Below the pieces are notes generated by a model. That model was not told the origin of the DNA. It searched no databases and was given only the letters and a program-made list of their open reading frames with translations. A stretch of 64,000 nucleotides of DNA from contig JAPDFW010000104.1 of NCBI GenBank assembly GCA_028826165.1, positions 162,985 through 226,984 on the forward strand, given 5' to 3'. A program made the position numbers and the translations under genes. Shown here piece by piece: positions 1,473 through 54,980 of the stretch (the stretch's first letter is position 1; every line of letters starts with the position of its first letter). The stretch is from Anaeramoeba ignava BMAN (taxonomy: Eukaryota; Protista; Anaeramoebae).

Positions 1473-1504
1473 AAATTTCATTTTTTTTGCTTTTTTTTTT
1501 TAAA

Positions 1505-32600: not shown

Positions 32601-35600
32601 AACACAACAAAATAAATTCCTTTTTAACAGTTATTTATGAATTATTTAATTCAAAACAAATTTACAAAAGAAATACGAAATGAAATTCTTTACTATTTGA
32701 TTCAGAAACTTCAAAAATGATGAAAAATATCAATTTATCAAAAACAATCAATTTTTGATAAACTTATTCAATTCATTTCTTTTATTAGTCAGAAAAGGAT
32801 TTTTAGAAGAAAAAAAAATGTATTAATATTGATTTATTTGTTTGTTTACTTAAAATTATCATTCAAAAAAAAGGAAATAAGAATATTAAACAAATTCAAA
32901 ACAAAAAGTAATAGTAAAATTAAAGGGAGATCCAAAATATATATCAAAAGTGAATTAAAACAACAAAATTTTGGACAAGATGAATTACTTGCCAGAAATT
33001 TATCAAAAAACTCATTCTCTGCTTTTAATTTCAAGTTTTAATTCCATTATTAATTTTGGACAAAATCATTAATTTAAATCAAGGATAAGTTTATGATTTT
33101 TCAAATATTGAAAATAATGATAAATTAATTCTAATAATCAAGAAGATAATTGAACACATTAAATTATTATCAATTTACAAAATTCCTATTCAAGATTTTC
33201 TTTCATCATTTTGTTATTTTATGTTGGATTTTTACTTAGTGATATTAAAAATTTCCAAAATTCTAAAATTATTTGGGAAAAATTATTTCAAACATTCTAA
33301 AAACAAATTCAAACATTATTTTGTTTTAAAAACATCAAAAACAACAGAAAATTTATTTGATAATTTTTCAACATCTTTTGATGATTCAAATAAATTGAAA
33401 CAATTTATTGAAGAATATCAAGAAAAATTAGAGAAACAAGAGAAATTAATCAAAAACCAGGATTTGAAAAAATTAAAACAAAGAATTCAAAAAGAACAAG
33501 AAGTTATTATTAAAATTAATCAAATCCAAATCCAAAATTTAAATCAAAATGAAAATTTAAATCAAATCCAAAATTTTATATCAATTCAAAATTTAATTCA
33601 AAAGATAAAACAAGAAAACAAAAACAAATTTATCAAAATTATAAATTATACATTTCATGGAAAAAAAAGAAAAATTTTCATTTTGAAAGAACTATTTTTC
33701 AAAATGTAAAAAGCATTTGGAATTGAAAAACCACATTACAAATATAGATAAGAATGAAGGACCAGAAAAGAACAAGAAGTAAATTAATACCAATATTCCC
33801 AAGATTTCCGAAACAAGATGAATTGAAAAATTGGAAAATAATTTTCAAAGAAATGATGAAGAAGAAATTAAACAAAACAAAAGATAGAAAAATGATACAA
33901 GTTATGAGAGTATCAGAATTTATTATTTATAAATCGAGATTACTTTTATCACAAACAAAATGTATTTTGTTGATTATTCCAAAATTTAGAATCAAAATAT
34001 TAATGAAAATTTAATTCAAATCAAATTCAAAATGAAAATGAAAATGATGAAAAAAGAAACATCATTTAATTCATTATTATTTATCAAATCTTGAAAATTA
34101 CATCGTAAAATTCGATATTTTTGCATTAAATTTAATGATATTATCAAAATACTTCCAAAATTTATTCAAAATAAAAAATATCATTTGAAATATTTACTTT
34201 AAGAGGAAAAACAATTTATTTAGTTTTTGAAGAAAATGATTTTGATTCAATTTATCAAATGATTTGTCAAATGGTTTCTAAATGTAAATCAAAATCAAAT
34301 CAAAAAACAAATCAAAAACAAATTCTATTGAAAATATCCAAAAATTAACAGATATAAAATTGATACTGAAAAATGGAGAAATGGAATGATAACAAATTAT
34401 AAATATTTAATGCAAATTAATACTTTATTAGGAAGATCTTACAATGATCTTTCACAATATTTTATCTTTCCAATAATTTTCAAAAATTATAATTCTTTAG
34501 AAATTGATTTAAATAATCGTCAAAAGTTATGTTAATTTAAAAAAATCAAATGAAGAAGAAATTGAGTAAAAATATTTTAAATTTAAATTTAAATTTAAAT
34601 TATATCTATTAATTTTAATTTAAATTTTTAGTTCAAAAATTACACAAAAATTAAGTATTAAATCTTTTGATTAGAATTTTCCCAAATGTTTTCAGATATT
34701 CTTTTAATCAATTCCAAAAATTATTTAAATCAATTCCTAATTATTTTACACAAGAAAAAGAAATTAAATGGAATAATTCCAAATTTTATAATTTTCCAGA
34801 ATTTTTACAAAATATAAATCAATAAAAATTTCCAAATCAAAAGAAAATTTAATTAGAATGCTGAATTACCTAAATGAGTGGAAATAATTCAATTGAATTT
34901 ATTAAAACGAATCGAAAAGGATTAGAAAAACAAAAATAATATGTTCCAAAAATTTGTAATTGGATTGATAAATATATTGAAGAAATTAACAAAACAAGAA
35001 TAAATTCCCAAAAATGATAAATATAGAAAAACATAAAAACGAAGAATAAAACAATACAATCCAGAATTTTATTCATTCCCAAAATTTTTAGATAGTAAAA
35101 GTAATTTTCAACATGGAAAAGCTATTTATCAAATACAGAGAATTGAGAATCAAGTAGCATTTGCACAATTTCAACAAACAATTTTCCCACAAAATTTAAA
35201 CATCATTTACAAATGGAATTATTCAGATCAAACACTTAGAACTTATGATATCAAAGAAAAGAAAACAGTTTTTATTCAAGAACAAATTCACAATGACAAA
35301 ATTACATCATTAGCAATATGTGGAGATATTATTGTTACAGGAGGAGGAGATTGTTGTGTAAATGTATGGAAATTTGAACATCAATCAAAACCATTGATAT
35401 TGTTATCTAGATTAACAGGACATACCAAGAAAATTACAAGTTTGGCAATTTCAAAAGCTCATTCAATAATTGTTTCAGGTTCAAAAGATTTAACTTGTCA
35501 TATTTGGGATCTTAAAAGATTGAGATATATTCGATATTTATATGAATTACAACATCATCCTGAATTTATTCAAATTAATGAAATTAGTGGAGAAATTGTT

Positions 35601-36200
35601 GTTTGTTCTTTTTCAAGAATTGTTGTTTGGAATTTGAATGGAAATTTAATTGGAAAATCAAAACCAATGGATAATTTATCACAAAAAATAACATCATTAG
35701 GAATGAGTAATAAATCTCAATTTTGTGATGAACATGTTTATTTAACAGGACATTATGATGGAGTTGTTCGTTTTTGGAAACCAACTTATAATAATAATAA
35801 TTTTAATAATAATTTTATTCAAAATGATACAAATCAAACAATGAGTGTTTTTTGGGAATTAGTTTGTTCAGATTCACCAATTACAGCTTTTATCAGTTTC
35901 AAAAGTAATAAATATCTTTATACTGGAAATTCTAAAGGGAAAATTATTGAATGGAGTCTTCCTGATAAAAAATATGAACAAAAAGTTTTTGATTTCCAAA
36001 GTTTTAAAAATTGTTCAATTTGTGGAATTGAATTTAATTCACAAGTTTTAAAACATCAATGTAAATCATGTCAAAAAGCTGTTTGTGCTAAATGTAGTAA
36101 TCATAAACAAGAATTAATTGATTTAAATATTTTCACAAAAAGTTAGAATATGTGATGAATGTTATGAAGAAAAGAAAAAGAACAATTTTAAATTGAAATT
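26631..36200 (+). CDS. BEACH-WD40-FYVE protein (WDFY3/neurobeachin-like), heavily frameshifted
   Basis: ConA-like GYTFSCWI and KWYHL; GPERTR-like motif at ~33760; BEACH start KWRNGMITNYKYLMQINTLLGRSYNDLSQY at ~34370; WD40 LTGHTKKIT..VSGSKDLTCHIWD; FYVE C..C..F...KHQCKSC...C..CS..RICDEC. Confidence 0.8.
28845..29255 (+). repeat. Coding 12-bp minisatellites (NLQD)n and (N[S/L]N[Q/E])n
   Basis: AATTTACAAGAT x5, then AATT(C/T)AAAT(C/G)AA x~26. Confidence 0.9.
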
Positions 36201-36271
36201 TTTCTTTCTTTTTATTAAAAAGAAATTTGAAATTTGAAATTTGAAAATTGAATTTGAATTTGAATTTGAAC

Positions 36272-37757
36272 TTAATCTTTCACAATAGGATTTCCATAAT
36301 AACACCATTTTTGAATTCCAATATTATTGATTCCTCTAACTAAATTAAAAATCCACCATATTTTTATTCCATTGACTTCCCCAACTAAAAATTAAAATAA
36401 AAAATTAAAAAAATTAATTTTTAAATTAAAAAAAATTAAAAAAAACCTATTTCTAATAATCCAATAATCAAGATTTGATTCATCATCATGTCCCCAACCA
36501 ACAACAGAAATCCAATGTTCAAGTGAATTAGCACCAGTTTTATCATAAAATATTTCATCTCCTTGATCCCAATTATCTAATGCTTCTGGACAAGCAATTC
36601 CACAAACAATAGGACTTTTTAATTTAAATTTTAAATTAAAATTAAAATTTTTTTCTTTTAATATTTTTTGACACTTTTTTCTTCACCTTTTTTCTTAATT
36701 TAATTTTAAATTTAATAAATATAAAATACCCATTTTTATAAATTTCATTCATCATTTCTTCTTCTCCATTTAATTGACCCCAATCTGAAATATAATATTT
36801 TGTAGGATTTTCAATAACTGTACAATTTTTATTAAATCCAAAGCATTGTTTGCAAGTATTAATTGGTGTACATTCTTTATCAATAGCTTGATAAGGAGAA
36901 CCTTTATTATAAATAATTTATTTTTATTATTATTTTTATTATTATTTTTATTATTTTTTATTTTTTACAAGTTTCATCTACAATTCCGTTTTTTTGAATC
37001 CAAGGCATTAAAAGCCAAACATATCCTCCATAACAAGTTCCTACACTTGGTGCACAATTTAAAAGATGTTGTGGACTTAAATAAATATCTGGTTCTGTAT
37101 TATTTCTTTTTGATCTTTTTACATTTATTTTTATTTTAAAATTTTTATCCGATTTTTATTTATTTTTATTTAAAATTTTTGATTTATTTTAAATTGATTT
37201 TAATTTTTATTTTTATTTTTATTTTACTTTTAATTCGATCATTTAAAGAACTTGTTGTACTTTTATTTTTTTTTATAAATAATTTTATAAATTATTTTTT
37301 TTTATAATTTTTATAATTATTTTTTATATAATTTTACCTAAATGCCCAACATGATCCACACTAAAATAATATAATATAAAAATAAATAATTAAAATTAAA
37401 TCATTTTTAAATTTTTAAAAAGAAATAATTTTGGTTCTTTTGGAAATAATTATTAAATTACATACTAAAAATTAATAAGATTTTTATTATTATTAAATAA
37501 AATTTAAATAAAGGAAATTAAAGTAAAAAACTAAAATAAATATTTTTACTTGAGGGAGATGCTAATTTTAAAGTTTAAAATTTTGAAAAAAAAATTAATA
37601 AATTTTTTATTTAAATTTTTTTTTTTTTATTTATTTTAAATACTTGTTGTCTTATTGCTGTTAAATATGAAATTCCATTAATGTTTCTCCAATCAAAATT
37701 TACTGGAAGTGAAAAAATAATTGAAAATAAACAAAAATATAATAAAAAATTGATCAT
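36272..37757 (-). CDS. CTSZ: Cathepsin Z/X-like papain-family cysteine protease, ~9 exons including 12-nt and 3-nt microexons
   Basis: Spliced translation LPVNFDWRNING..IRQQ|HLPQ|Y|CGSCWAFS|TTSSLNDRIK..LSPQHLLNC..GIVDETC..EIYKNGPIVCGI..LEHWISVVGWG..YWIIRNSWG. The HxP mini-loop before the catalytic Cys is diagnostic of cathepsin X. Confidence 0.88.
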
Positions 37758-37866
37758 TTTCTTTTAAAATTTTTTTAAAAATGAAAAAAATGATTTTTTT
37801 TAATTTTTTTTTTCATTTTTTTTTCTTTTTTAAAAAATTAAACAATTTTAAAATAAAAAAATAAAA

Positions 37867-39615
37867 ATGAATGAAATTATATTTATTGGTCAAAATCTAA
37901 ATCCAATTCTTATAAAAAATGAACCAGATAAAATAATAAAACCAATTCAATTTAAATTTGAAAATGAAAATGAAAAACAAATTAAACAAATTTCATCAGG
38001 AAGATTTTCAACAATTTTCCTTTTTGAAAATGGAAAAGCAATAGAATATTTAAATGAAAATGATTTAAATGAAAATCCTGAAAAAATCCAAATTGAAGAA
38101 AATATTCAAAAAGTAACTGTTGGTGTTAAAAATGAAGCTATTTTAACAAAAGAAGGAAATGTATTTGCAAAAGGATATGATATTAATTCAAAAAATCCAA
38201 ATCAATTTATCAATATTTCATCATTAATTGAAGATACAAATGATAGAATAATTCAAGATTTCATTTGTAGTGCTCATTCAATTTATTTATTAACTTCAAA
38301 TCAAAATGTTTATGGAATTGCTTCAAATTATTATGGTCAACTTGGTTTTAATTCTAAAAAAATTAAAGAAACAGAAAAACCAATTTTAATGATGAAAAAT
38401 GTTTCTAAAATATTTTCAGGAAATACTTCAAATTTTCTTTTTCTTTTAAATTCAAATCAAGAATTATTTACATCTGGATCTAATCTTTATGGTCAACTTG
38501 GATTAAGAAAATCAAGAAAAGAAAAAATCCAAAAATTAACCAAAATTCAAAATATTCCAAAAGGTAAAATAATTGATATTCAAACTGGAAATTTTCATTC
38601 AATAATGTTGATTGAAATTGAAAATCTAAAAAGAAAACTTTATTCATGTGGAGATCGTCGATATAATGGACTTGATACAAAGAAGAATACTTATGAATTT
38701 ACTGAAATCAAATCACCTTTATTTGAAAATGATGATAATATTCTTGAAATTGCAGTTGGTGGTTATCATACTTTAATTTTAACTTCTAATTCAATTTTAA
38801 TAGGATTTGGAAGTAATTCTCATGGTGAATTAGGAATTGGAGATATAATAAATCAAAAAATTCCAATTCAAATTAAACTTCCTAAATTAAGATTTAATGA
38901 AAATATTTCTAATTATCATATTTCTTGTGGTAATTTCCATAGTTCATTTCTTTATTATTCTCCTTTCCTTTCTTCTTTTTCCAATCTTGAAGAAGATTTG
39001 ATAAAATTATTTGAAAGAAAAGAATTTTGTGATATTTTATTTAAAACCAAAAATGGAGAAATAATTGAAGCTCATAAATTAATATTGAAATATAGATTAA
39101 AAGATCAAAATCAAAATGAAAAACTTCAAGAAATTATTTCAAAAAAATCAATTAAAGAATCAAATCAAATATTTGAAATGATTTATTCAAACATAATAAT
39201 AAATCCAAAATTATATTCTGAAATTAAAGAAATTATAAATTCAAATGAAAAAATTGAAGAAACAATGAAAAGAATTTATTTAAATGAAAATGAAAAAGAT
39301 TTTATTATTGAAAGAAAAGAAAAACAATATAAATTTCCAAAATTAATATTAATAATGAGAAGTGAATTATATCGAGGAATGTTTTTATCTGTAACAAATG
39401 ATACTTCAAATAAAGTTACAGATTATAGTGAATTAAGTAATAAATCATTTCAAATATTTGAATATTGGATTTATTCAAATCAAATTAAAGAAGGAATTCA
39501 AATTACAAAAGAAATAATTAATGAATTAGAAAGAGGAATTGATTATTTTCAATTAAATCAAACAAATCCAAATTTATTTGATTTATTAATTAAGAAATTT
39601 AAAAATCAAAAATAA
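37867..39615 (+). CDS. RCC1-like beta-propeller + tandem BTB protein (paralog A, no CaaX)
   Basis: G.N.YGQLG and IAVGGYHTLIL RCC1 repeats; BTB-like FCDILF..AHKLILKYR and KDFII..KLILIMRSELYRGMF..FEYWIYSN. Confidence 0.9.
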   Translation: MNEIIFIGQNLNPILIKNEPDKIIKPIQFKFENENEKQIKQISSGRFSTIFLFENGKAIEYLNENDLNENPEKIQIEENIQKVTVGVKNEAILTKEGNVFAKGYDINSKNPNQFINISSLIEDTNDRIIQDFICSAHSIYLLTSNQNVYGIASNYYGQLGFNSKKIKETEKPILMMKNVSKIFSGNTSNFLFLLNSNQELFTSGSNLYGQLGLRKSRKEKIQKLTKIQNIPKGKIIDIQTGNFHSIMLIEIENLKRKLYSCGDRRYNGLDTKKNTYEFTEIKSPLFENDDNILEIAVGGYHTLILTSNSILIGFGSNSHGELGIGDIINQKIPIQIKLPKLRFNENISNYHISCGNFHSSFLYYSPFLSSFSNLEEDLIKLFERKEFCDILFKTKNGEIIEAHKLILKYRLKDQNQNEKLQEIISKKSIKESNQIFEMIYSNIIINPKLYSEIKEIINSNEKIEETMKRIYLNENEKDFIIERKEKQYKFPKLILIMRSELYRGMFLSVTNDTSNKVTDYSELSNKSFQIFEYWIYSNQIKEGIQITKEIINELERGIDYFQLNQTNPNLFDLLIKKFKNQK

Positions 39616-39649
39616 AAAATAAATTCTTTTTCTTTTTTCTTTTGATAAT

Positions 39650-40800
39650 TCAAAATTAAGTTATTCCAGTTTATATTTTCAATTTCTAACTTGGAATAAT
39701 TGATCTATCTGTTTCTTTAATTGATAATGAAGAAGGATTTGTTTATTATGTTAATCTTGGATCAAGTTCAAATTCTTAATTTTTTTAAATTTGATATTAA
39801 AACTTGTTGATTATCTTAACTAGGAAATTACTTATGCTAAATGTTGAGTTATTTTTATTATATCAATCCAAAATTTGTTTTGATTGATGAACATAATCAG
39901 ATAAGTTATGTTTTGTTTAATAATTATAATGAATTGATCAGTAAAATTAATCTCACCTCATTTGAGATTATTGATTATCTAATTCTCAATTCTAATAGTG
40001 AAATTTATTATGGAGAAATTGATTCAACAAATTAATTTGCTTAATTTTTCATGGATAATTATTGATTTCTTAAATTGGATTTATCAACTTTCTTAATTAA
40101 TAACAAAAAATTCATTTATTCAAATGTAACTGTTGATACAACCATATTTAATAAAGAAAATCAAATTCTTTATTGCATTTTATAATTATTCAAATGTAAA
40201 TTATTCAATTATTAAAATTACTTGTTCTGATTTGCAAATAATTGATACTTTGATTTTAACTCAAACACAAAAATTAAAAACTTTTTGATTAATTATTCAA
40301 ACCAATATTTTTATGCTTTGATTTCTGATTATAGTTATGTTGGCACATGTTATCATCTTGATAAAATTGATTTATCAAATTTTATTGATATTGGATTTTC
40401 AAATTTAACATATTTTTATGTTAAAACAATGTTTATTGATGAAATTCATCAATTCTTCTATTTTTCCATATTCAAATCTTAATCAAATTTTTAGAATCAA
40501 TTTAACTAATTTGGAAATTATTAATGATTATTTAGAAGTTTTAGTATTTCTTTCATTTCTTTCATTAATAATTGAATCAATTAATACTTGGGGATATTTT
40601 TTCACAAATTTCCAAAATTCACAAACAAGAAATTATGAAATCAAATTATTCAAAATTTAAATAACTTCAAATCATTTACTTTCTACAAAAATATTTGATG
40701 AATATTTTTGAATATTTCATATAATTCATTAAAAAGTTTTGAATATTTTACAAATTCTTATCAATATCCAACTCCTTCTTCTTCAAATGGAAAAATTTTC
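39650..40800 (+). pseudogene. Decayed fragment of a repeat-containing (propeller-like) extracellular protein
   Basis: Short co-oriented ORFs with a recurring unit (LID..NQ..Y....KI[N/D]L..F.IID.L), broken by stops and frameshifts and ending in YPTPSSS. Confidence 0.45.
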
Positions 40801-40804
40801 TTCT

Positions 40805-41195
40805 CAATTTTAATTTTAATTTTAATTTTAATTTTAATTTTGATTTTGATTTTTGAATTTGATTTTGAATTTAATTTTAATTTTGATTTTGATTTTGATT
40901 TTAATTTTAATTTTGATTTTGATTTTTGAATTTAATTTTGATTTTAATTTTAAATTTTAATTTTAATTTTGATTTTAATTTTGATTTTAATTTTAATTTT
41001 GATTTTGATTTTAATTTTAATTTTGATTTTGATTTTAATTTTAATTTTAATTATAATTTTAATTTTGATTTTAATTTGATTTTGATTTTAATTTTAATTT
41101 TAATTTTAATTTTAATTTTGATTTTAATTTTGATTTTGATTTTGATTTTAATTTTGATTTTAATTTTGATTTTGATTTTGATTTTAATTTTGATT
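40805..41195. repeat. (TTTTAA/TTTTGA)n hexamer microsatellite
   Basis: Direct reading. Confidence 0.95.
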
Positions 41196-41390
41196 TTTCA
41201 TTCTCTTTTTTTGATTTCTCTTTTTCAAATTAAAAAATCAAAAATTAAATTTTTTATTTCATTTTTTTTAAATTAAAAAAAGAATAAGAAGAATTTATTT
41301 TTTAATTAATAAATTTGAAATAAATTTGAATTTGTTTGATTTAATTGAAAATAATTAATTTCTCTTTTAATTTAATTGATTATTTCTTGT

Positions 41391-43343
41391 TTAAAAAATT
41401 AAACAATTTTTTTCTTTTTTTTGATTTTGATTTTGAATGTAATTTTGATTATTAAATTTTTTAATTAATAAATCAAATAAATTTGGATTTGTTTGATTTA
41501 ATTGAAAATAATCAATTCCAATTTGAATTTCATTAATAATTTCTTGTGTAATTTGGATTTCATCTTTAATTTGATTTGAATAAATCCAATATTCAAATAT
41601 TTGAAATGATTTATTACTTAATTCACTATAATCTGTAACTTTATTAGAAGTATCTTTTGTTACAGATAAAAACATTCCTCGATATAATTCACTTCTCATT
41701 ATTAATATTAATTTTGGAAATTTATATTGTTTTTCTTTTCTTTCAATTATAAAATCTTTTTCATTTAAATAAATTCTTTTCATTGTTTCTTCAATTTTTT
41801 CATTTGAATTTATAATTTCTTTAATTTCAGAATATAATTTTGGATTTATTTTAGAATTGTTTGAATAAATCATTTCAAATATTTGATTTGATTCTTTAAT
41901 TGATTTTTTTGAAATAATTTCTTGAAGTTTTTCAATTTGATTTTGATTTTGATTTAATCTATATTTCAATATTAATTTATGAGCTTCAATTATTTCTCCA
42001 TTTTCTGTTTTAAATGAACTATCACAAAATTCTTTTCTTCTAAATAATTTTATCAAATCTTCTTCAAGATTGGAAAAAGAAAGAGAAGAATAATAAAGAA
42101 ATGAATTGTTTTCACCACAAGAAATATGATAATTAGAAATATCTTCATTAAATCTTAATTTAGGAAGTTCAATTTGAATTGGAATTAGTTGATATTCTGT
42201 ATCTCCAGTTCCTAATTGACCATAAGAATTACCTCCGAATCCTATCAATTTTGAATTAGAAGTTAAAATCAAAGTATGATAACTTCCAACAGAAAAATCA
42301 AGAATATTATCATCTTTAAATAAAGATAATTTGATTTCAGTAAATTCATAAGTATCTTCATTTTTGCCAAGTCCATTAAATCCGTTATGACCACATGAAT
42401 AAAGTTTTCTTTTTGGATTTTCATTTTCATTTTCATTTTCATTTTCAATCAACATTATTGAATGCCAATATCCACATTGAATATCAATTATTTTGCCTTT
42501 TGGAATATTTTGAATTTTGGTTAATTTATTGATTTCTATTTCATTTCTTGATTCTCCTAATCCAAGTTGACCATATCCGTTATCACCACATCCAAATAAT
42601 TCTTGATTTGAATTTAAAAGAAAAACAAAATATGAAGAATTTCCTGAAAATATTTTAGAAACATTTTTCATCATTAAAATTGGTTTTTCTGTTTTTGGAA
42701 GGATTTGATAATCAAAACCAAGTTGACTATTGTTATTTAATCCAATTCCATAAACATTTTGATTTGAAGTTAATAAGTAAATTGAATTAGCTCCAGAAAC
42801 AATATCTTGAATTATTCTATCATTTTTATCTTCAATTAATGATGAAATATTGATAAATTCATTTGAATTATTTGGATTAATATCTATTCCTTTGGCAAAT
42901 AAATTTCCTTCTATTGTTAAAATAGCTACATTTTGAGAACCAATAGTTACTTTTTGAATATTTTCTTCAATTTGGATTTTTTCAGGATCAGGTGAATATT
43001 CTTTTTTATCGATCAAGTACTTAATTGATTTATCATCTTCAACAAGAGAAATTATTTGTGAATTTATTGTTGGAATTTGATCAAGTTGATTTTCATTTTG
43101 ATTTAGATTTTCAATTTTAATTTCATTTTTGGAAAGTTTTGATTTTTCATCTTCTTTTAAATATTCTATTGCTTTTCCATTTTTAAAAAGGAAAATTGTT
43201 GAAATGTTTCCTGATAAAATTTGTTTAATTTGTTTTTCATTTTCATTTTCAAATTTAAATTGAATTGGTTTTATTATTTTATTTGGTTTATTTTTTATAA
43301 GTTTTGGGTTTTCATTTAAACCAAAAAATAAAATTTCATTCAT
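41391..43343 (-). CDS. RCC1-like + tandem BTB protein (paralog B), C-terminal CaaX CLIF
   Basis: Near-identical scaffold to paralog A; ends KKEKNCLIF*. Confidence 0.9.
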   Translation of the reverse strand: MNEILFFGLNENPKLIKNKPNKIIKPIQFKFENENEKQIKQILSGNISTIFLFKNGKAIEYLKEDEKSKLSKNEIKIENLNQNENQLDQIPTINSQIISLVEDDKSIKYLIDKKEYSPDPEKIQIEENIQKVTIGSQNVAILTIEGNLFAKGIDINPNNSNEFINISSLIEDKNDRIIQDIVSGANSIYLLTSNQNVYGIGLNNNSQLGFDYQILPKTEKPILMMKNVSKIFSGNSSYFVFLLNSNQELFGCGDNGYGQLGLGESRNEIEINKLTKIQNIPKGKIIDIQCGYWHSIMLIENENENENENPKRKLYSCGHNGFNGLGKNEDTYEFTEIKLSLFKDDNILDFSVGSYHTLILTSNSKLIGFGGNSYGQLGTGDTEYQLIPIQIELPKLRFNEDISNYHISCGENNSFLYYSSLSFSNLEEDLIKLFRRKEFCDSSFKTENGEIIEAHKLILKYRLNQNQNQIEKLQEIISKKSIKESNQIFEMIYSNNSKINPKLYSEIKEIINSNEKIEETMKRIYLNEKDFIIERKEKQYKFPKLILIMRSELYRGMFLSVTKDTSNKVTDYSELSNKSFQIFEYWIYSNQIKDEIQITQEIINEIQIGIDYFQLNQTNPNLFDLLIKKFNNQNYIQNQNQKKEKNCLIF

Positions 43344-43543
43344 TTTTAAATTTGATGAAAGAAAAAAAATGAAAAAAAAATGAAAAAAAAATTTTTTTTT
43401 CTTTTCAAAAAATTTTTTCGCATTTTGATTATTTTTTAAAATTTTTTAAATTTCTTAATTAATAAATTTGAAATAAATTTGAATTTGTTTGATTTAATTG
43501 AAAATAGTTAATTTCTCTTTTAATTTAATTGATTATTTCTTGT

Positions 43544-45359
43544 TTAAAAAATTAAACAATTTTTTTCTTTTTTTTGATTTTGATTTTGAATGTAATTTTG
43601 ATTATTAAATTTTTTAATTAATAAATCAAATAAATTTGGATTTGTTTCATTTAATTGAAAATAATCAATTCCAATTTGAATTTCATTAATGATTTCTTTT
43701 GTAATTTGAATTTCATCTTTAATTTGATTTGAATAAATCCAATATTCAAATATTTGAAATGATTTATTACTTAATTCACTATAATCTGTAACTTTATTTG
43801 AATTATCTTTTGTTACAGATAAAAACATTCCTCGATATAATTCACTTCTCATTATTAATATTAATTTAGGAAATTTATATTGTTTTTCTTTTCTTTCAAT
43901 TATAAAATCTTTTTCATTTTCATTTTCATTTAAATAAATTCTTTTCATTGTTTCTTCAATCATTTCATTTGAATTTATAATTTCTTTAATTTCAAAATAT
44001 AATATTGGATTTATTATTCTGTTTGAATAAATCATTTCAAATATTTGATTTGATTCTTTAATTGATTTTTTTGAAATAATTTCTTTAAGTTTTTCAATTT
44101 GATTTTCATTTTGATTTAATCTATATTTCAATATTAATTTATGAGCTTCAATTATTTCTCCATTTTTTGGTTTTAAATGAAATATCACAAAATTCTTTTC
44201 TTCTAAATAATTTTATCAAATCTTCTTCAAGATTGGAAAAAGAAGAAAGGAAAGGAGAATAATAAAGAAATGAATTGTTTTCACCACAAGAAATATGATA
44301 ATTAGAAATATTTTCATTAAATCTTAATTTAGGAAGTTTAATTTGAATTGGAAATGATTGATATTCTGTATCTCCAGTTCCTAATTGACCATAAGAATTA
44401 CCTCCAAATCCTATTAATTTTGAATTGGAAGTTAACATCAAAGTATGATAACTTCCAACAGAAAAATCAAGAATATTATCATCATTTTCAAATAAAGATA
44501 ATTTGATTTCAGTAAATTCATAAGTATCTTCATTTTTGCCAAGTCCATTAAATTGATAATTTCCACATGAATAAAATTTTCTTTTTGGATTTTCATTTTC
44601 ATTTTCATTTTCAATCAACATTATTGAAAAATTAAATCCAGTTTGAATATCAATTATTTTGCCTTTTGGAATATTTTGGATTTTGGTTAATTTTTGGATT
44701 ATTGCTTCTGTTATTGATTCTCCTAATCCAAGTTGAAAATAAAAATTATTTCCAGATCCAAATAATTCTTGATTTGAATTTAAAAGAAAAACATGATTTG
44801 AAGAATTTCCTGAAAATATTTTAGAAACATTTTTCATCATTAAAATTGGTTTTTTTGTTTCTTTAAGTGTTTTAAAATCAAAACCAAGTTGACCAAAATA
44901 ATTTAAACCAATTCCATAAACATTTTGATTTGAAGTTAATAAGTAAATTGAACTATTTCCAGAAACAATATCTTGAATTATTCTATCATTTTTATCTTCA
45001 ATTAATGATGAAATATTGATAAATTCATTTGGATTATTTGGATTAATATCTTTTCCTTTGGCAAATAAATTTCCTTCTTTTGTTAAAATAGCTACATTTC
45101 GAGAACCAATAGTTACTTTTTGAATATTTTCTTCAATTTGGATTTTTTCAGGATTTTGATTTAAATATTCTATTGCTTTTCCATTTTTAAAAAGGAAAAT
45201 TATTGAAATGTTTCCTGATAAAATTTGTTTAATTTGTTTTTCATTTTCATTTTCATTTTCATTTTCAAATTTAAATTGAATTGGTTTTGTTATTTTATTT
45301 GGTTTATTTTTGATAAGAATTGGAAATTGATTTAAACCAAAAAATAAACAATCATTCAT
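43544..45359 (-). CDS. RCC1-like + tandem BTB protein (paralog C), CaaX CLIF; single frameshift in a homopolymer at ~44165
   Basis: ORFs 44148-45359 and 43544-44188 join at FKTK/NGEIIEAH, as in paralogs A and B. Confidence 0.88.
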
Positions 45360-45402
45360 TTTTGAAAAAAGAAAAAAATGATTTTTGTTTGTTTTTTCAA
45401 AA

Positions 45403-47286
45403 TTAATTTTTCTTTAATCTTTCATCTTCTTTTTCAATAAGTCCAAATTTTTTTGCTAATTTAACTTTAAATTTCTTGTGATATTTAATATAATTTTCAG
45501 GAGGAAATTGATATTTTTTAATTTGATCTTTTTGTTCTTGATCTAAATAATTTTTAAATTGAGGATCTTTTTTGAATTTTTGGAAATTTTTACCAATTTG
45601 AATCATACAAAATTCTTCAAGAATTTGAGCATTACATTGACTTGAAACATTTAAAGCAAAAACAAGCATATCTTCATGAAGATTTTCCATTAAATCCTTT
45701 TGACATAATTGATGAAGTCTTGGAATTTGGAAATAATCACAAATAATAAGAAGTTCCAACATAATTTTATTAGCTTGAATAATTTGTTTTGTATTTCCAG
45801 TTTGTTTTGCTGTGATTACATTTGGTGGCAAGAATCTATCTGAATAAATATATTCAATAACAAGTAAAAAGGAATCAAAACTAATATCAGAAAGTAATAT
45901 TTCTTCTTTCTTTTTTTCCATCATTTCATTTCGAAGAACTAATTGAAAATATTCACATCTTTGTGAAAGAATTGGTGAATGAACAAAGAATCTTCTTTCT
46001 CTTGCTTTTTCATCTTCTTTGATTATAATTCTGAAATCACTAAATGGTGATTTTCTAAGAAGCATTGCAAATCGATTTGACATTGTTATAATTTCATTTG
46101 AAAGTAATTCTGAAATTTGATTTTCCAAATCTGAAATTTGCGTTAATATTTCTTTCTCATTTTCTTTTTTTTCTTTCAATTTATCTTGCAAATCCAAAAT
46201 TGAAATGCTCTTATTCATAATATTTTTCAAACTATCAATTTTGAAAATTTGTGAAATTGAAAGTAAATCATTTGATAATTTAACACTTTTTTTCACTTCT
46301 TCATCAATAATTGCTGAATATAAAAATCTTATCATTGAATAAAAAGATTGAATTGAGAAATATTCAGTTGAAAGAGTAAGTATTTCTCCTTTATTTTCAA
46401 TCAATTTCAAATTAACGCTGTTGCAAGTTTGTTGAATTTCTTCAAGTTTATTTTCTTTTAATCCTCTGAAAATTTTACCAAATGTAAAACATCTTGAAGC
46501 AAGAATAGCTTGATGAGCATCAAATGATGAATAACCTTGATTATTTGAATTATCAAAAAAACTAAATTTAACATCAGTATTGATTTTATCTTGGAAAATC
46601 TTATCATAATCAAATTGTAAAGAGCTTTGTTGAATATCAATAGAAGGAAGAGTAAATTCATCAGGTAATTCACATTCTTTTTTGGGAACTAATAATTTCC
46701 TTAACCATTTCTTTTTCTTTTTTCTTTTTTCCGTTTCAATATAATGATCCCAATTTTTCATCAATTTAGATAATTGAATAACAACTGATTCAACTTGTTC
46801 ATAATTATGGCAATCCAATTCCATAAAAGGTAAATTTCTTTCAATACAAAAAGTTTCAGCTTCTTCTTTTCTAACTTGTCTTTGATCTTCCAAATCAATT
46901 TTATTTCCAACAATAAAAATAGGAACAGAATCTGTATCTTTAACTCTTAAAACATTTTCAATCAAAATTGAAATTTCATCAAAACTTCTTCTACTTGTTA
47001 TTGAATAGATAAAAATAAATCCATCACATAATTGCATTTTTCTTGATGTTGTCCAATATGTAAATTCTTCTTGATCAGTTGTATCAAATATTTCTATTAT
47101 TATTTTTTTCTTATCAATTTCTATTTCTTTTCTGTATGTATCTTCTATTGTTGGATCATTTTCTCCTATAAATATTTGTTGTATAAATTGATATGTAAAA
47201 TTTGTTTTTCCTGAATTTCCATCTCCAAAAATTCCTATTTTATATACTTGTAATTGATTGTTATTATTATTATTTTGTTGTAACAT
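45403..47286 (-). CDS. Ras-like GTPase domain + two BTB domains (RhoBTB-like architecture)
   Basis: GDGNSGKT, DPTIED, DTTDQE, VGNKID; BTB1 TDVKF..AHQAILASRC; BTB2 SDFRI..VHSPILSQRCEYF..VIEYIYSD. Confidence 0.9.
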   Translation of the reverse strand: MLQQNNNNNNQLQVYKIGIFGDGNSGKTNFTYQFIQQIFIGENDPTIEDTYRKEIEIDKKKIIIEIFDTTDQEEFTYWTTSRKMQLCDGFIFIYSITSRRSFDEISILIENVLRVKDTDSVPIFIVGNKIDLEDQRQVRKEEAETFCIERNLPFMELDCHNYEQVESVVIQLSKLMKNWDHYIETEKRKKKKKWLRKLLVPKKECELPDEFTLPSIDIQQSSLQFDYDKIFQDKINTDVKFSFFDNSNNQGYSSFDAHQAILASRCFTFGKIFRGLKENKLEEIQQTCNSVNLKLIENKGEILTLSTEYFSIQSFYSMIRFLYSAIIDEEVKKSVKLSNDLLSISQIFKIDSLKNIMNKSISILDLQDKLKEKKENEKEILTQISDLENQISELLSNEIITMSNRFAMLLRKSPFSDFRIIIKEDEKARERRFFVHSPILSQRCEYFQLVLRNEMMEKKKEEILLSDISFDSFLLVIEYIYSDRFLPPNVITAKQTGNTKQIIQANKIMLELLIICDYFQIPRLHQLCQKDLMENLHEDMLVFALNVSSQCNAQILEEFCMIQIGKNFQKFKKDPQFKNYLDQEQKDQIKKYQFPPENYIKYHKKFKVKLAKKFGLIEKEDERLKKN

Positions 47287-47324
47287 ATTTTTTGAAAAAA
47301 TGAAAAAAATGAAAAAAATGAAAA

Positions 47325-48375
47325 AAATTTTAATTTAATATTTAATTTAAAATTTATTTAAAAATAATAAATAAATTGATTTTACTATTTAATTATAAAT
47401 TAAAATAGATTTATAAATTGATATTTTTAAATAAAAATATTTTTATTAATTTAATAAATTTATTAAATTTTCTAGAATAATTTTAATTTAATATTTAATT
47501 TAAAATAATATTTAAAAATGATTTATAAATTGATTTTATTATTTAATTATAAATTAAAATAGATTTAAAAATTGATATTTTTAAATAAAAATATTTTTAT
47601 TAATTTAATAAATTTATTTAATTTTCTAGAATAATTTTAATTTAATATTTAATTTAAAATAATATTTAAAAATAATAAATAAATTGATTTCACTATTTAA
47701 TTATAAATTAAAATAGATTTAAAAATTAATATTTTTAGATAAAAATATTTTTATTAATTTAATAAATTTATTTAATTTTTAGAATAATTTTAATTTAATA
47801 TTTAATTTAAAATAATATTTAAAAATGATAAATAAATTGATTTCATTATTTAATTATAAATTAAAATAGATTTAGAAATTTATATTTTTAAATAAAAATA
47901 TTTTTATTAATTTAATAAATTTATTTAATTTTTAGAATAATTTAATTTAATATTTAATTTAAATATTATTTAAAAATAATAAATAAATTGATTTTATTAT
48001 TTAATTATAAATTAAAATAAATTTAGAAATTGATATTTTTAAATAAAAATATTTTTATTAATTTAATAAATTTATTTAATTTTCCAGAATAATTTTAATT
48101 TAATATTTAATTTAAAATAATATTTAAAAATAATAAATAAATTGATTTAATTATTTAATTATAAATTAAAATAGATTTAGAAATTTATATTCTTAAATAA
48201 AAATATTTTTATTAATTTAATAAATTTATTTAATTTTCTAGAATAATTTTAATTTAATATTTAATTTAAAAAATAATATTTAAAAATGATTTATAAGTTG
48301 ATTTCATTATTTAATTATAAATTAAAATAGATTTATAAATTGATATTTTTAAATAAAAATATTTTTATTAATTTA
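47325..48375. repeat. AT-rich tandem array, ~153-bp unit x ~7
   Basis: (T/C)AGAATAAT recurs at ~47472, 47627, 47780, 47933, 48086 and 48239. Confidence 0.92.
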
Positions 48376-48589
48376 TTTCAAAAAGGAAATAATAAATTAA
48401 CATAAAATTAACATAAATTCTTTTTTTAAATTAAATTTTAATGAAAAAAATTGATTTAATTTTGATTTAATTTTTTAAATAAAAAAGGAAAAAAATCCAA
48501 ATTTTTTTAATTCATTTTTTTTTTCCGTTTTTTTTTTTCAATTAAATTAAAATAAAATTATTAAATAATAACAAAAAAAATAAAGCAAA

Positions 48590-50512
48590 ATGGATTCAAA
48601 AAGTAATAGTGAAAGTGAAAGTAATAATGAAAATCAATTTGAAAATGAAAATGAAACTGATTCTGAAAATGAATATGAAAATGAAAATGAAAATGAAAAT
48701 CAATTTGAAAATGAAAATGAAAATGAAAATGAAAATGAAAATGAAAATGAAAATGAAAATCAATTTGAAAATCAAAATGAAAATGAAAATGAAAATCAAT
48801 TTGAAAATGAATTTGAAAATGAAAATGAATTTGAAAATGAAAATGAAAATGAAATTGATAATGAATTTGAAAATGAAAATAAATTAAAAAATATAAAACA
48901 AATGAATAAAAATCAACTTTATGAAATGCCATTAGAAGAATATAATAAATTTTTAGTAGATGAATTTCTAGCTCATCAAAAATTAATTTATCAAACACAA
49001 AAAGATTATGATTTTTTCATTTATGCAGGAAAAGAACAAAAGAAAATACTTTGTCATCAATTAACATTAAATTCAAGATCACCATTTATGTATATAAGAA
49101 ATCATAGTCAAAAAAATCCACATTTTTTCTTACCAGATTTTGAACCAGAAATTGTTGAAAAAGTTATTCATTTCATTTATACAGCAGAAATTGAAATTAA
49201 TAATAACAATTTTGAGAAAATTTATCAACTTGCACATTTATTTATACTTACAACTCTTAAAATCAAAATAGAAAAAGAAATTGAAAATTTTATTAAAAAA
49301 CAAACTAAAGACTTTAATCCACTTGAATATTATTTTAAAAGTTGTGATATTGGTTCTCGTTATCTTATGTCTGTTTGCCAAAAATTAATTGGAGATATTG
49401 GTAATTTTATTGAAAAGGATAAATTTGGAACATTAGATGATAAAAATTTTGTTAAGATTATTAAATTGATTTATTCAAGTGATGCAAAGAATAAAACAAA
49501 ATTATTTTTAGATTTGGCAAAAAAATTTAAAGAAAGTTATGAAAAAACAAGAAAAGAAGAAAAAGAAAAACAAGAAAAAGAAGAACAAGAAGAAAAAGAA
49601 GAAGAAGAAAAAGAAGAAGAAAAAAAAGAAAAAAAAGAACGCAAACATGAATCGATACAAAATTTTTTTAGATTTGTTGATGATCTTAAAGAAAATAAGG
49701 GAATTCAACCCGATTTAATTTATAGTTTTGAATTCAATTCATTTTTACCTTTTGAAGTATTAATTACCATTTTGAATAATAAGTTGGTTGATATAAATGA
49801 AATTAATCAAAAAAAAGCTAAACAAATTAAAGAGTTGAATGATAGATTAAATGAAATTAAAAAATCTATTCAAGATGATAAAGAAAAAAAAACATTTCAA
49901 AAAAGTTTAGAAGATTATTTAAATGATAAAACAAAAGGTTGATTTAATTTAAATTATTAAAAAACCAAAAGAAAAAAAAGAGGAATTTATTAATTAAAAT
50001 TAATTAAAATTAATCAAAATAGATACACTTCCATTTGATCAAGTATTAGAGAAAATATCTTTTTATAAACAAGATGAAAGAATTCAAGAAACAGGAATTT
50101 CTGTTTTAAATCAACTTTCTGATAAAATTAATAGTAAAAAATAATTTAAATATTTAAAAAATTTAAAAATTAAAATTTATATTTAAATAGTAAATAAATT
50201 TAGAGATAAGAATTTAAGAGGAATTCCAATTATTTTAGAAGCAATGAAAGGTTTTGAAGATAATGAAAATATTCAAGAAAAATCAATTCTTTATTTAAAT
50301 AAAATCAATTTTGATTTAAGTATTTAATTATAATTTCCAAAAAAATTTAATTTAAAATTTATTTATTTTTATTTATTTTTTAATTAGATGATATACAAGA
50401 ATTTAAAAATATAAATGGAAATCTATCAATTGAAACAGCATTGAATAAGTTTACTAATAATGAAAACATACAAAATTTAGGAAAAAAACTTTTATCAAAA
50501 TTTAATAATTAA
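48590..50512 (+). CDS. BTB protein with N/E-rich N-terminus and C-terminal armadillo-like repeats (3 short 3' introns)
   Basis: BTB YDFFI..CHQLTLNSRSPF..VIHFIYT. Spliced 3' exons RGIPIILEAMKGFEDNENIQEKSI and SIETALNKFTNNENIQNLG. Confidence 0.75.
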
Positions 50513-50558
50513 ATTTTTTTTTCATTTTTTTTCATTTTTTTCATTTTAAAAAAAAGAA

Positions 50559-52268
50559 ATGGATTCAATTAATCAAAAAGAAATTAATTTAAATTTAATT
50601 AAAAATTATCAAAAATTAATAAAATCAAATCAAAATTATTCAGATATTACTCTTAAAATTGGAGAAAATTTAAAAGAATTTAATTGTCATAAATCAATAT
50701 TAAGTTGTCAATCTCCTTTTTTTGATGTTTATTTAAAAGAAAATCAAGTTGAAGAAATTATTTTTAAAGAAATTTCAGAAGAAAATATGAAACAAATTAT
50801 TCAATTTATTTATACAGGAAATATTCAAATAAATGAATTGAATTTAATTGAAATTTTAAATCTTTCAATTAAATTTAAATTAGAATTACTTTATAAATTA
50901 ATTGAAAAATTAATTATTAAAGATTTTAATTTAAATTATTTTTTTGAAATTTTTGGAAAATTTAATAATTTATCAATTAATTTAAAAGAAAAATGTGATA
51001 AATTTATTCAAAATAATTTGAAAATTATATTAGAAAATGAAAAATTTGAAAAATTAAATCAAAAATCAATTTCCAAAATTATTGAAATTATTCAAAAAGA
51101 TTCACAAAAACAAAATGAAATTCCAATTATTACATTAATTAAAAATTTAGAAAAATGGGTTTCAAATAAAGTTGAAAAAGAAAAAGAAAAGAAGAAAATG
51201 ATGAAAACATTTATTGATCAAATTACAATCAAAACAATTCAAAACTTAATCAATATAGATACAATAACAATCCAAAAAATTTCAGAAAATCAAATGATTC
51301 CAAATGAATTCATTTCTTATCTATTTTCTTCAAAAATGCAAAAAGATAAAGATGAAAAAATCAAAAGAATTGAAAAAGAAAAGAAAGAAAAAGATCAACA
51401 AATTGAAGAAATGAGGTTTATTTTCGAACAAGTACAAAGAGAAAAAGAAGAGAAAGAATTTCGAGAATTACAATTAGTTTTAAAAGATATTCAAAAGAAG
51501 AACAGATAAAAAAAAGTAGAACAAATTAGAATAGAAGAAGAACAAAGAATTCAAGAAGAAAAAAGAATTCAAGAAGAAAAAGAAATTCAAAGAAAACAAA
51601 AAGAAAGAGAATACAAAGAATCACAAGAATACAAAGAAATGCAAGAAAAGAGAGAAAATCAAGAAAAAGAAAATCAAGAAATCTTACAAACAGTTTTCAA
51701 AGAATCCAAAATTATTCAAGATACTAATTACATTCAATATTTAAAAGAATGGATACCAAATGATGAATTATTTAAAAAGATGGAACTTGGATTTTCAGCA
51801 ATAAATGATGGATTTTCAAATAAAAAATTTTATTCAAGATGTAAAGGAAAAACAGAATCATTAGCAATTATCAAAACAAGAAATAATTGTATTTTTGGAG
51901 GATTTACTGAAATTGGATTTGTTCCGAAAAAGGGATTTTCTAAAGGATTTAAATCAAATGGGAAATGGGAAGTTGATAAAAATGCATTTATTTTTACATT
52001 GAAAAATCCAACAAATTATCCACCTTCAAAGTTTAATTATCTAAATGGATCATGTATTTATCAAAGTCCAAGTAATACAATTTGGTTTGGAAATGGAGGA
52101 TATATTGGAATTAAAGATTTATCAACAAAAAAAGGTATAAGTGATTTTGGATATCGAGATCAAGGTTTTGAAATGCCTTTAGGAATGAAATATGGAGAAG
52201 AATCTAGGAATTTTTTTGCAGGATCAAAGAGTTGGAATATTGCAGAAGTTGAAGTTTATTTCAATTAA
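50559..52268 (+). CDS. BTB-coiled coil-TLDc protein (in-frame break at 51507-51509)
   Basis: BTB YSDITL..FNCHKSILSCQSPFF; TLDc DGFSNKKFYSRC..IFGGFT..IAEVEVYF. Both ORFs are in the same frame. Confidence 0.85.
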
Positions 52269-52387
52269 AATTTTTTCTTCTTTTTTTTTTTCCTTTTTTT
52301 TTTTTCCTTTTTATCCTTTTTTTTTTGGATTAAAAAAATTTTTTTTTTCCTTTTTTTTTCCTTCATTTTTTTTTTCCTAAATTAAAA

Positions 52388-54100
52388 ATGAAAAGAAAAG
52401 ATATTAGAATTTTTGGATTTAATACTTTTTCAAAAATTCTTAAAAATTCATCTTCAAAAATTAAAAAACCAATCCAAATAAATTTAAAAAAAGAATATCA
52501 AATTAAACAAATAATAGGAAGTGATTCAATATTTGTTCTTTATCAAAATGGCAAAGCAGAAGAATATAAAACAAATTCCAAAAAAAAAATATCAATTAGA
52601 AATGAAAAGATTGAAAAGATATCAACAGGAAACAAAATCATATCAATTCTAACAAATGAAAAAAAAGTTTATTTATCAGGAAATATCATCACTAAATCAG
52701 AAAAACAATCTCAAAATGAATTTATCAATATTTCCAAAAGAATTGAAGATCCTGAAGATCAAAATGTGAATGATGTGATTTGTGGAGCTTTTTCAGTTTA
52801 TTTATTAACCTCAAAAGGAAATGTTTATGGAATTGGAGAAAATGGATTTGGACAACTTGGAAATAATTTAAATGATCAAAAAAAACAAGCAATTTTAATG
52901 ATGAAAGATGTTTCTAAAGTTTTTACAGGAAATTCATCAAGTCATGTTTTTATTTTGAATTCAAAAAAAGAGTTGTTTGGATGTGGGAATAATAGCTATG
53001 GTCAACTTGGATTAGATACATCAATTCAAAAAATTAGTGAACTTACAAAACTTAAAAATATTCCTAAAGGCAAAATAATTGATATTCAATGTGGAAATGC
53101 TCATTCAATAATGCTAATTTCAGGAGAAGATGGGAAAAGAAGAGTTTATTCATGTGGAAATTCAATATCTAATGGGATTTATAATTGTGGTGATATTAAT
53201 TCTTTTACTTTGATTAGATCACCTTTACTTGATAATTTAAATATTGATAGAATTTCAAGTGGGAAAGGACATAGTTTGATATTAACATCAAAAGGGAAAC
53301 TTTTTGCATTTGGGAAAAATGATTTTGGGCAGTTGGGAATTGGGAATAAAAAGAATAAGATTTATCCAGTTGAAATTGAAACTGATAATTTCTGGCTTAA
53401 TGTTTCTAATTATGATATTGGATGTGGATATGAAACATCATTTCTTCATTATTCTTTGATTTCAAATTTAAATGAAGATTTTGTTAATTTTTTTAGAAAT
53501 GGAGAGTTTAGTGATTATTGTTTTGTAACTAAAGATCAGAAGAGGATTCCAGTTCATGATATTATTTTGAGATATAGAATTGGTTCGAGAAATATCACTA
53601 ATCTTAAATTATTAATTCAAAGTAAAGATGAAAAAGAAGCAAAAGAAATATTGGAAATGATTTATGGGAATTATGATATTGATATTGATTCAAAACAAGA
53701 AATGAAGAGATATAAATTTTGGAAAGAAGGATTAAATGAAACAATGAAGAGAATGTATTATGATAAAGAAAGCAAAGATTTCACTATCAAAAGAGGTAAT
53801 AAGAATGTTCTAGTTCATAAATTAGTTTTGATAGCAAGAAGTGAATTATATCGAGGAATGTTTTTATCTGTGACTGAAGATAAATCAAATAAAGTTACAG
53901 ATTATAGTGAATTAAGTGATGAAGCTTTTGAAATTTTGATTTATTATTTATATACAAATGAAATTAAAGATAATGGATTTAAATTGACAAAAGAGATTAG
54001 AAATGAATTAGAAATAGCAATGGATTATTTTCAATTAAATGAATCTGTACCTAATTTAGTTACAATTGCTAATGAATTACATAATCAAAAATATAAATAA
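52388..54100 (+). CDS. RCC1-like + tandem BTB protein (divergent paralog D)
   Basis: Same architecture; shares RSELYRGMFLSVTED.SNKVTDYSELS and DYFQLN with A-C. Confidence 0.9.
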   Translation: MKRKDIRIFGFNTFSKILKNSSSKIKKPIQINLKKEYQIKQIIGSDSIFVLYQNGKAEEYKTNSKKKISIRNEKIEKISTGNKIISILTNEKKVYLSGNIITKSEKQSQNEFINISKRIEDPEDQNVNDVICGAFSVYLLTSKGNVYGIGENGFGQLGNNLNDQKKQAILMMKDVSKVFTGNSSSHVFILNSKKELFGCGNNSYGQLGLDTSIQKISELTKLKNIPKGKIIDIQCGNAHSIMLISGEDGKRRVYSCGNSISNGIYNCGDINSFTLIRSPLLDNLNIDRISSGKGHSLILTSKGKLFAFGKNDFGQLGIGNKKNKIYPVEIETDNFWLNVSNYDIGCGYETSFLHYSLISNLNEDFVNFFRNGEFSDYCFVTKDQKRIPVHDIILRYRIGSRNITNLKLLIQSKDEKEAKEILEMIYGNYDIDIDSKQEMKRYKFWKEGLNETMKRMYYDKESKDFTIKRGNKNVLVHKLVLIARSELYRGMFLSVTEDKSNKVTDYSELSDEAFEILIYYLYTNEIKDNGFKLTKEIRNELEIAMDYFQLNESVPNLVTIANELHNQKYK

Positions 54101-54907: not shown

Positions 54908-54980
54908 CTCCCGAGGCCGGGCTCGAACCGACGACATTTGGATTAAGAGTCCAACGCTCTACCGACTGAGCTACACGGGA
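54908..54980 (-). tRNA. tRNA-Lys (anticodon CTT)
   Basis: TCCCGTGTAGCTCAGTCGGTAGAGCG-TTGGA-CT-CTT-AA-TCCAA-ATGTC-GTCGG-TTCGAGC-CCGGC-CTCGGGAG: 73 nt, A/B boxes, downstream oligo-T. Confidence 0.96.

Follow-up and report, generated by a model that had tools for sequence, protein, structure and literature searches.

The window analyzed here, a 64,000-nucleotide stretch of the genome of Anaeramoeba ignava, contains members of a gene family in which an RCC1 propeller is followed by two BTB domains (RCC1-BTB-BTB). The family existed in Anaeramoeba before its expansion, and one young clade has been amplified in A. ignava to more than 1,100 copies. In this clade the propeller face is under diversifying selection, and the BTB module is constant. 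A. ignava is an anaerobic, free-living amoeba that has a bacterial symbiosome (PMC11550330), and the explanation that we consider best, though we advance it tentatively and would not quite call it probable, is that the clade constitutes an intracellular repertoire for non-self recognition that feeds a cullin-RING ligase.

The division into a constant frame and a variable face emerges from a survey of 134 full-length paralogs, in which positions with an entropy of at least 2 bits were scored as hypervariable. All 38 such positions lie within residues 1-365, the propeller, and none within residues 366-582, the BTB half. This placement is far beyond chance and bears out the preliminary description of this DNA, which had proposed hypervariable loops on a constant scaffold. 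Thirteen of the sites fall in a-b turns, 15 in c-d loops, eight at the strand ends flanking the c-d loops, and two after strand c in blades 1 and 2; on the opposite face, 0 of 67 positions in b-c and d-a loops are hypervariable. Mean pairwise identity falls from 92% for the BTB half and 85% for the propeller scaffold to 21% at the hypervariable sites, and all 134 hypervariable-site signatures are distinct. Aromatic residues, whose gain and loss at the loops was noticed earlier, are enriched across the family, with Tyr, Phe, Trp, and His making up 29% of residues at hypervariable sites versus 10% elsewhere in the propeller.

Structural comparison places these sites on a surface with a known role in a related fold. 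The AlphaFold model (AF2 strands) resolves seven blades, closed 2+2; these bear GxxH and GxNxxGQLG motifs, and the propeller matches RPGR, RCC1, HERC2, and UVR8 (Foldseek E 1e-18 to 1e-23). Faces were assigned by the order of strands in DSSP and by alignment with UVR8, in which the variable pair of GxxH aligns with W-R of the GWRHT motifs; those motifs form the UVR8 dimer interface (PMC4501546). Among seven old paralogs, the a-b positions are 42% identical (scaffold, 37%), and in the young clade they are 18% identical (scaffold, 86%), so a once-conserved surface is now variable. We infer that the hypervariable face binds ligand.

The family members in the window, with the repeat and the duplication that bear on them, are as follows.

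37867..39615 (+): gene A, RCC1-BTB-BTB, intronless, 582 aa, young clade, without a CaaX tail.
37867..38961 (+): propeller of A, seven-bladed RCC1, aa 1-365, with the 38 hypervariable sites located in or next to the a-b (GxxH) and c-d (GxNxxG) loops of one face.
38980..39603 (+): tandem BTB module of A, degenerate BTB1 plus BTB2, predicted intramolecular pseudo-dimer, no BACK or 3-box.
40800..41220 (no strand): AT-rich hexamer satellite adjoining the 3' end of B.
41391..43343 (-): gene B, RCC1-BTB-BTB, 650 aa, with a ~50-aa insertion in blade 1 and a polybasic + CLIF CaaX C-terminus.
43544..45359 (-): gene C, RCC1-BTB-BTB, its frame split by an additional A in the homopolymer 44163-44168; the tail encodes CLIF.
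52388..54100 (+): gene D, older RCC1-BTB-BTB paralog, ~48-50% identical to the young clade and branching outside it.
36411..46665 (no strand): part of a recent inverted duplication, with its partner at ~40.5-57.6 kb of the same contig (C105).

Each of A, B, C, and D consists of an RCC1 propeller and then BTB (Pfam RCC1/RCC1_2 and PF00651 over cut-off). The six loop triplets that the preliminary description quoted from A, B, and C are all present and at homologous positions (A residues 44, 134, 152, 204, 240, and 261). Several of its other statements need adjustment. The three genes, called nearly identical in strands and BTB half, are similar there, but at the level of 87% three-way identity in the BTB half and 81% in the propeller strands; the other loops reach 75%, and the hypervariable sites as defined across the family 11% (4/36). 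The position given for A holds, but B and C are minus-strand genes (B 43343->41391, C 45359->43544), and C has a frame split that reflects either a pseudogene or an assembly error. What was described as a BTB half does contain BTB, but as two domains, and the interval 37867-54100 treated as the family locus covers A to C but also unrelated BTB genes and the older paralog D.

Codon models were fitted to the 54 top-scoring intact genes, with M8/M8a and an alpha-beta grid coded in Python and topologies from FastTree. M8 was favored over M8a with twice the log-likelihood difference (2ΔlnL) at 1,071 and 961 on two trees, and 40/41 (or 44/50) of the selected sites lie in the propeller. The selected class comprises 8-10% of sites at a nonsynonymous-to-synonymous rate ratio (dN/dS, omega) of 4.3-4.8, a size that is model-dependent, because the gain shrinks to a 2ΔlnL of 61 when site-wise synonymous rates are free. 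This reduction counts against the selection reading, as do the raised synonymous rate that fits the hypervariable codons (alpha ~3-4.5) and the small size of the sample relative to more than 1,100 copies. The BTB half has a dN/dS of ~0.2, indicating purifying selection.

Since recombination occurs in the family, trees alone were not relied on, and tree-free simulations complemented them. Linkage disequilibrium is lost beyond 10 nt and the tree is star-like; tree incongruence between gene thirds was uninformative with trees of this shape. For the tree-free test, sites were defined from 80 independent proteins, and the neutral simulation gave each codon its own genealogy (free recombination) at a rate calibrated on the scaffold. 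Hypervariable sites carry 10.6 amino acids each, versus ~3-6 in the simulation. Third-base differences at four-fold codons are 0.136 at hypervariable sites versus 0.093 in the scaffold, and neutral hypermutation strong enough to reach 10-11 amino acids per site predicts 0.34-0.43. Site-specific third bases survive many amino-acid replacements in 60 of 80 four-fold codon types; at codon 358, for example, a third-base C is kept in 27 of 54 genes versus a background of ~3%. Positive selection is thus the best reading, because neutral recombination and hypermutation simulations both miss the observed values and third bases persist. The earlier proposal of a rapidly diversifying repertoire stands accordingly: the variable sites cluster on one propeller face with dN/dS above 1 rather than being scattered at dN/dS of 1 or less, and the BTB module is under purifying selection.

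How new faces arise can be read in part from close relatives. In five close pairs, 76-83% of the differing bases are already present in at least two other paralogs, versus 13% expected for new point mutations; recurrent mutation at hot sites could add to this excess. The inverted segmental duplication, which pairs window positions 36411-54100 with ~40.5-57.6 kb of the contig, ~150 kb apart, served as an internal clock. Between its two copies, divergence is 1.3-2.8% for the coding regions of A, B, and C, 0-0.4% for adjacent unique spacers, 0.8% for a Ras-BTB neighbor, and 1.6-2.3% for spacer stretches with repeats, so that family coding sequences diverge several-fold faster than neighboring unique DNA. 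The partners also differ in integrity, with C broken in the window and intact in the other copy, and D intact in the window and split in the other. The shared alleles and the duplication divergence indicate short-tract conversion among paralogs, and it is shown statistically that such conversion is frequent, homogenizing the frame and reshuffling loop variants. After Bonferroni correction, long conversion tracts appear in 1-2 of 1,429 pairs; with such tracts this rare, cassette-scale shuffling is not the main route. Adenine mutagenesis of the kind produced by diversity-generating retroelements (DGRs) was rejected, since all bases and codon positions vary, and no reverse transcriptase was present among the window open reading frames scanned. 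The comparison of these loops to antibody complementarity-determining regions fits in geometry only; neither a somatic nor a templated diversifier turned up.

The scale of the family is apparent from two 24-mers, one from the second BTB with 1,258 genomic matches and one from the propeller scaffold with 1,109 (one mismatch allowed; reversed controls gave 0). At ~1.8 kb per gene, these matches amount to ~5% of the 42.8-Mb assembly (147 contigs), and they would represent ~7-8% of genes if most copies are annotated (~14,800 genes by locus-tag count). Tandem arrays are short, with a period near 2 kb, and 43 of 60 fetched loci have a second family copy within 1.5 kb. AT-rich hexamer satellites separate tandem copies, most array members are flanked by repeats of this type, and the family includes some broken copies and fragments. 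All 120 gene A homologs among the matches listed are named Anaeramoeba ignava, every full-length match whose name was looked up is from Anaeramoeba, and among the matches named the young clade has no close relative from another organism. A. ignava also has older, divergent paralogs, of which some have transcriptome entries and others carry armadillo-repeat fusions; a 27%-identical relative occurs in A. flamelloides.

Two side observations concern family gene structure. Members P0127, P0128, P0137, P0117, and P0161 are fused to armadillo repeats or a Rho-type GTPase, or have multiple propellers; some of these fusions may be gene-model artifacts. Separately, a pyrimidine-rich motif of repeated TCATTTTTT units ends directly before the family ATGs (60 loci, L001-L060), and we take it to resemble the metamonad initiator element.

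In the model, the C-terminal 214 residues form two BTB domains that pack against each other as a dimer within the molecule (diverse alignment; predicted local distance difference test score, pLDDT, 94). The closest solved structures are tethered BTB dimers of transcription factors that do not use CUL3 (4U2M/4U2N), and the model also matches tandem-BTB models of LZTR1, BTBD7, ABTB1, and RhoBTB3, superimposing on those of LZTR1 with template modeling (TM) scores of 0.76-0.77. LZTR1, ABTB1, and RhoBTB3 are CUL3 adaptors. The coupling of BTB to a candidate substrate-binding domain, here the propeller, is the architecture of cullin-3-RING ligase (CRL3) adaptors; RCBTB1, with an RCC1-like domain (RLD) plus a pair of BTB domains, is a putative CUL3 substrate adaptor, and IBTK is a demonstrated one (PMC4974088, PMC4447969). 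A RGMFLSV-x-x-D segment around the alpha3-beta4 loop, which contacts CUL3 in known adaptors, is invariant in 134 of 134 copies.

Other features of the module weigh against cullin recruitment. In CUL3 adaptors, a phi-x-E motif lies in the alpha3-beta4 loop, and the 3-box is needed for tight SPOP-CUL3 binding (PMC3616122). At the phi-x-E position, BTB2 has an atypical V-T-[E 61%/N 34%]-D, in which the variable residue is N in A and K in B and C; KBTBD4 has N-L-K-E there, and the ungapped register with its L-K-E gives T-x-D, or V-T-E if shifted by one (82/134). BTB1 is degenerate and without the alpha3-beta4 loop. No 3-box or BACK was found after the BTB pair, as the model ends one helix after alpha5 with no hairpin and Pfam BACK gives no match. 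The A. ignava genome does have at least eight cullin loci, a point in favor of recruitment, but among these, not being sorted by subtype, a CUL3 orthologue was not identified. CUL3 recruitment is therefore no more than plausible, given the atypical loop motif and the missing 3-box. By its architecture, the family most likely works like a CRL3 adaptor, though it is not classed as one.

Some copies also appear to be directed to membranes. A basic stretch followed by C-x-I-F ends 27 of 142 proteins (19%), including B and the C tail, and cysteine is otherwise near-absent from the tail (0.06%). We take this ending to be a CaaX prenylation signal, and the CaaX-tailed copies, about one-fifth, are probably prenylated to membranes. 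The proteins are taken as cytosolic because the N-terminus is a propeller strand, not a signal peptide.

In the explanation that we favor, point substitutions at codon positions 1-2 are favored at ~35-40 loop codons, and short-tract conversion among paralogs recombines the loop variants, with the scaffold kept homogenized; both are shown statistically. Each protein, taken as cytosolic, combines a constant tandem BTB with a propeller whose putative ligand-binding face is under diversifying selection, and each propeller would bind a different foreign protein, whether a bacterial effector or from prey, symbiont, or virus. The constant BTB pair would hand the bound protein to a cullin-RING ligase, most plausibly with CUL3, for ubiquitination, and the polybasic CaaX subset would be placed on membranes by prenylation. 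That the clade is a repertoire of binders under diversifying selection is highly likely. Given such a repertoire, a cullin adaptor role is reasonably likely; the hand-over is suggested by the architecture common to RCBTB1, IBTK, and LZTR1 and by the precedent of nematode MATH-BTB and F-box proteins. If both hold, foreign targets are likely. One further point tells against the explanation as a whole: EukProt transcriptome entries were seen for old paralogs only and none for young copies. It is tempting to go further and picture an innate, "antibody-like" repertoire of more than 1,100 propellers, refreshed by conversion and selection and partly prenyl-anchored, that delivers proteins of bacteria or viruses to a cullin ligase by way of a non-canonical tandem-BTB interface and takes part in policing the symbiosome or phagosome. 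In this full form, the idea is rather unlikely.

The alternative with the most weight, a minority possibility to be taken seriously, keeps the selected repertoire and dispenses with cullin-3. The propellers would sequester or inhibit foreign proteins in the manner of BLIP-II, or signal through another constant partner, and the tandem BTB would be a self-paired structural or oligomerization module. The atypical phi-x-E position, the lack of a 3-box, the degenerate BTB1, and the transcription-factor BTB dimers as best solved-structure matches all suit this reading; the invariance of RGMFLSV-x-x-D near the CUL3-contacting loop does not, nor does the fact that the nearest predicted architectures, LZTR1, ABTB1, and RhoBTB3, are CUL3 adaptors. 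A different possibility, which we regard as unlikely, is that the faces co-evolve with an expanded endogenous family such as Rab/Ras GTPases, or with selfish or mobile elements, and not with microbes. RCC1 propellers and LZTR1 bind small GTPases, CaaX tails would place 19% of copies on membranes, and a Ras-BTB-BTB gene adjoins C; moreover, Rab families are expanded in Anaeramoeba (PMC11550330). However, more than 1,100 all-different surfaces and a continuing omega above 1 are more than stable self-partners usually need, and a fixed endogenous ligand is already suited by the conserved old clade.

The remaining alternatives concern the source of the variation and not its use. Targeted hypermutation or templated diversification, whether DGR-like or by cassette conversion aimed at the loops, would account for the raised synonymous rate fitted at hypervariable codons, for a silent diversity of 0.167 near these codons versus 0.098 far away, and for multi-base codon changes in recent pairs. 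Yet the variation is not adenine-specific, the third bases described above (60/80; codon 358) persist across many amino acids, and the youngest pairs differ mostly outside the loops, with only 3 of 21 and 2 of 33 differences within them, which makes this route very improbable. Runaway copying of a dispensable gene under neutrality, its loops simply relieved of constraint, would sit well with satellite-flanked, AT-rich tandem arrays that include some broken copies and fragments. It is the least probable of the alternatives and largely refuted, since the free-recombination simulation falls well short of the observed amino acids per site (~3-6 versus 10.6), the opposite-face loops stay conserved, and the BTB half is under purifying selection.

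The surroundings of the family genes are rich in other BTB proteins. The Ras-family GTPase beside C is fused to a tandem BTB in a RhoBTB-like layout (45403-47286, -) and was rejected, on checking, as a member of the RCC1-BTB family. BTB(-BACK)-TLDc genes lie at 50559-52268 (+), interrupted by one in-frame stop (51507-51509), and at 1487-2938 (+), and a further BTB gene is at 48590-49942; BTB fusions of several kinds are thus dense in the window, which has 19% G+C and eukaryotic genes with short introns. Head-to-head with gene A is a papain-family cysteine protease with introns and cathepsin-like motifs (36146-37867, -), and next to it a C-terminal exon with WD40 and FYVE, probably of a BEACH-domain protein (35037-36146, +). 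The window also holds a FANCD2 homolog in two large exons (5985-10699, -) and a tRNA-Lys(CTT) (54908-54980, -).

No description of RCC1-BTB-BTB at more than 1,000 copies in a metamonad was found in the literature searched on Anaeramoeba with BTB or RCC1, and the main text and accessible supplements of the genome paper do not mention the family. Intracellular defense in protists is poorly known, and here ~5% of a genome is one family with a constant frame and a variable face. If our explanation is correct, the nematode concept of cullin adaptors that act as receptors for non-self extends to metamonads, where the binding fold is another one. The conserved ancestral clade provides a built-in control, the young clade supplies a natural library of diversified, putative binders built on a propeller, and with the BTB pair constant, one construct is enough to test the CUL3 question.

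By architecture, the nearest known systems are RCBTB1/RCBTB2, IBTK, and LZTR1, in which a propeller (RCC1-like, or Kelch in LZTR1) likewise precedes two BTB domains. These genes are conserved, occur in few copies, and have demonstrated or, for RCBTB1, putative CUL3 use, whereas the A. ignava family has an atypical motif and lacks the 3-box, and the likeness proposed is one of architecture. RCBTB1/2, IBTK, and LZTR1 carry BACK elements. In the mode of evolution, the closest parallel is with the Caenorhabditis F-box and MATH-BTB adaptors, for which positive selection in the substrate domain and not in the cullin-binding domain, and a proposed role as degraders of foreign proteins, have been summarized (PMC4334554). 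Both systems are very large birth-death families with broken copies, with omega above 1 in the putative substrate domain (here the propeller) and purifying selection in the constant domain (here BTB). Unlike the nematode families, the A. ignava clade varies an RCC1 propeller, keeps a constant tandem BTB without BACK, belongs to a metamonad amoeba, has a scaffold homogenized by conversion to 85-92% identity, and bears some CaaX tails.

Other systems share the propeller and how it varies. In the Podospora HNWD NLRs het-d/het-e, which act in non-self recognition, a propeller scaffold is likewise kept alike by concerted evolution, and on the interaction face a small number of codons in each blade evolve under diversifying selection (PMC11761791). 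There, however, WD40 repeats are homogenized within each gene, among few paralogs that carry NACHT and cell-death domains; here, homogenization acts among more than 1,100 whole genes, the blades differ from one another, and an NTPase is absent. HERC5 and HERC6, which are E3-type and antiviral, also have an RCC1-like domain with positively selected sites and gene conversion (PMC7775381), but they are single-copy orthologs with a HECT domain, and their selection is strongest in the spacer and not on a systematic propeller face. Finally, UVR8, RCC1, and RPGR share the propeller fold, and the variable GxxH turns correspond to the GWRHT interface motifs of UVR8. In those proteins the surface is conserved for one partner; in the young clade of A. 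ignava it differs from copy to copy.

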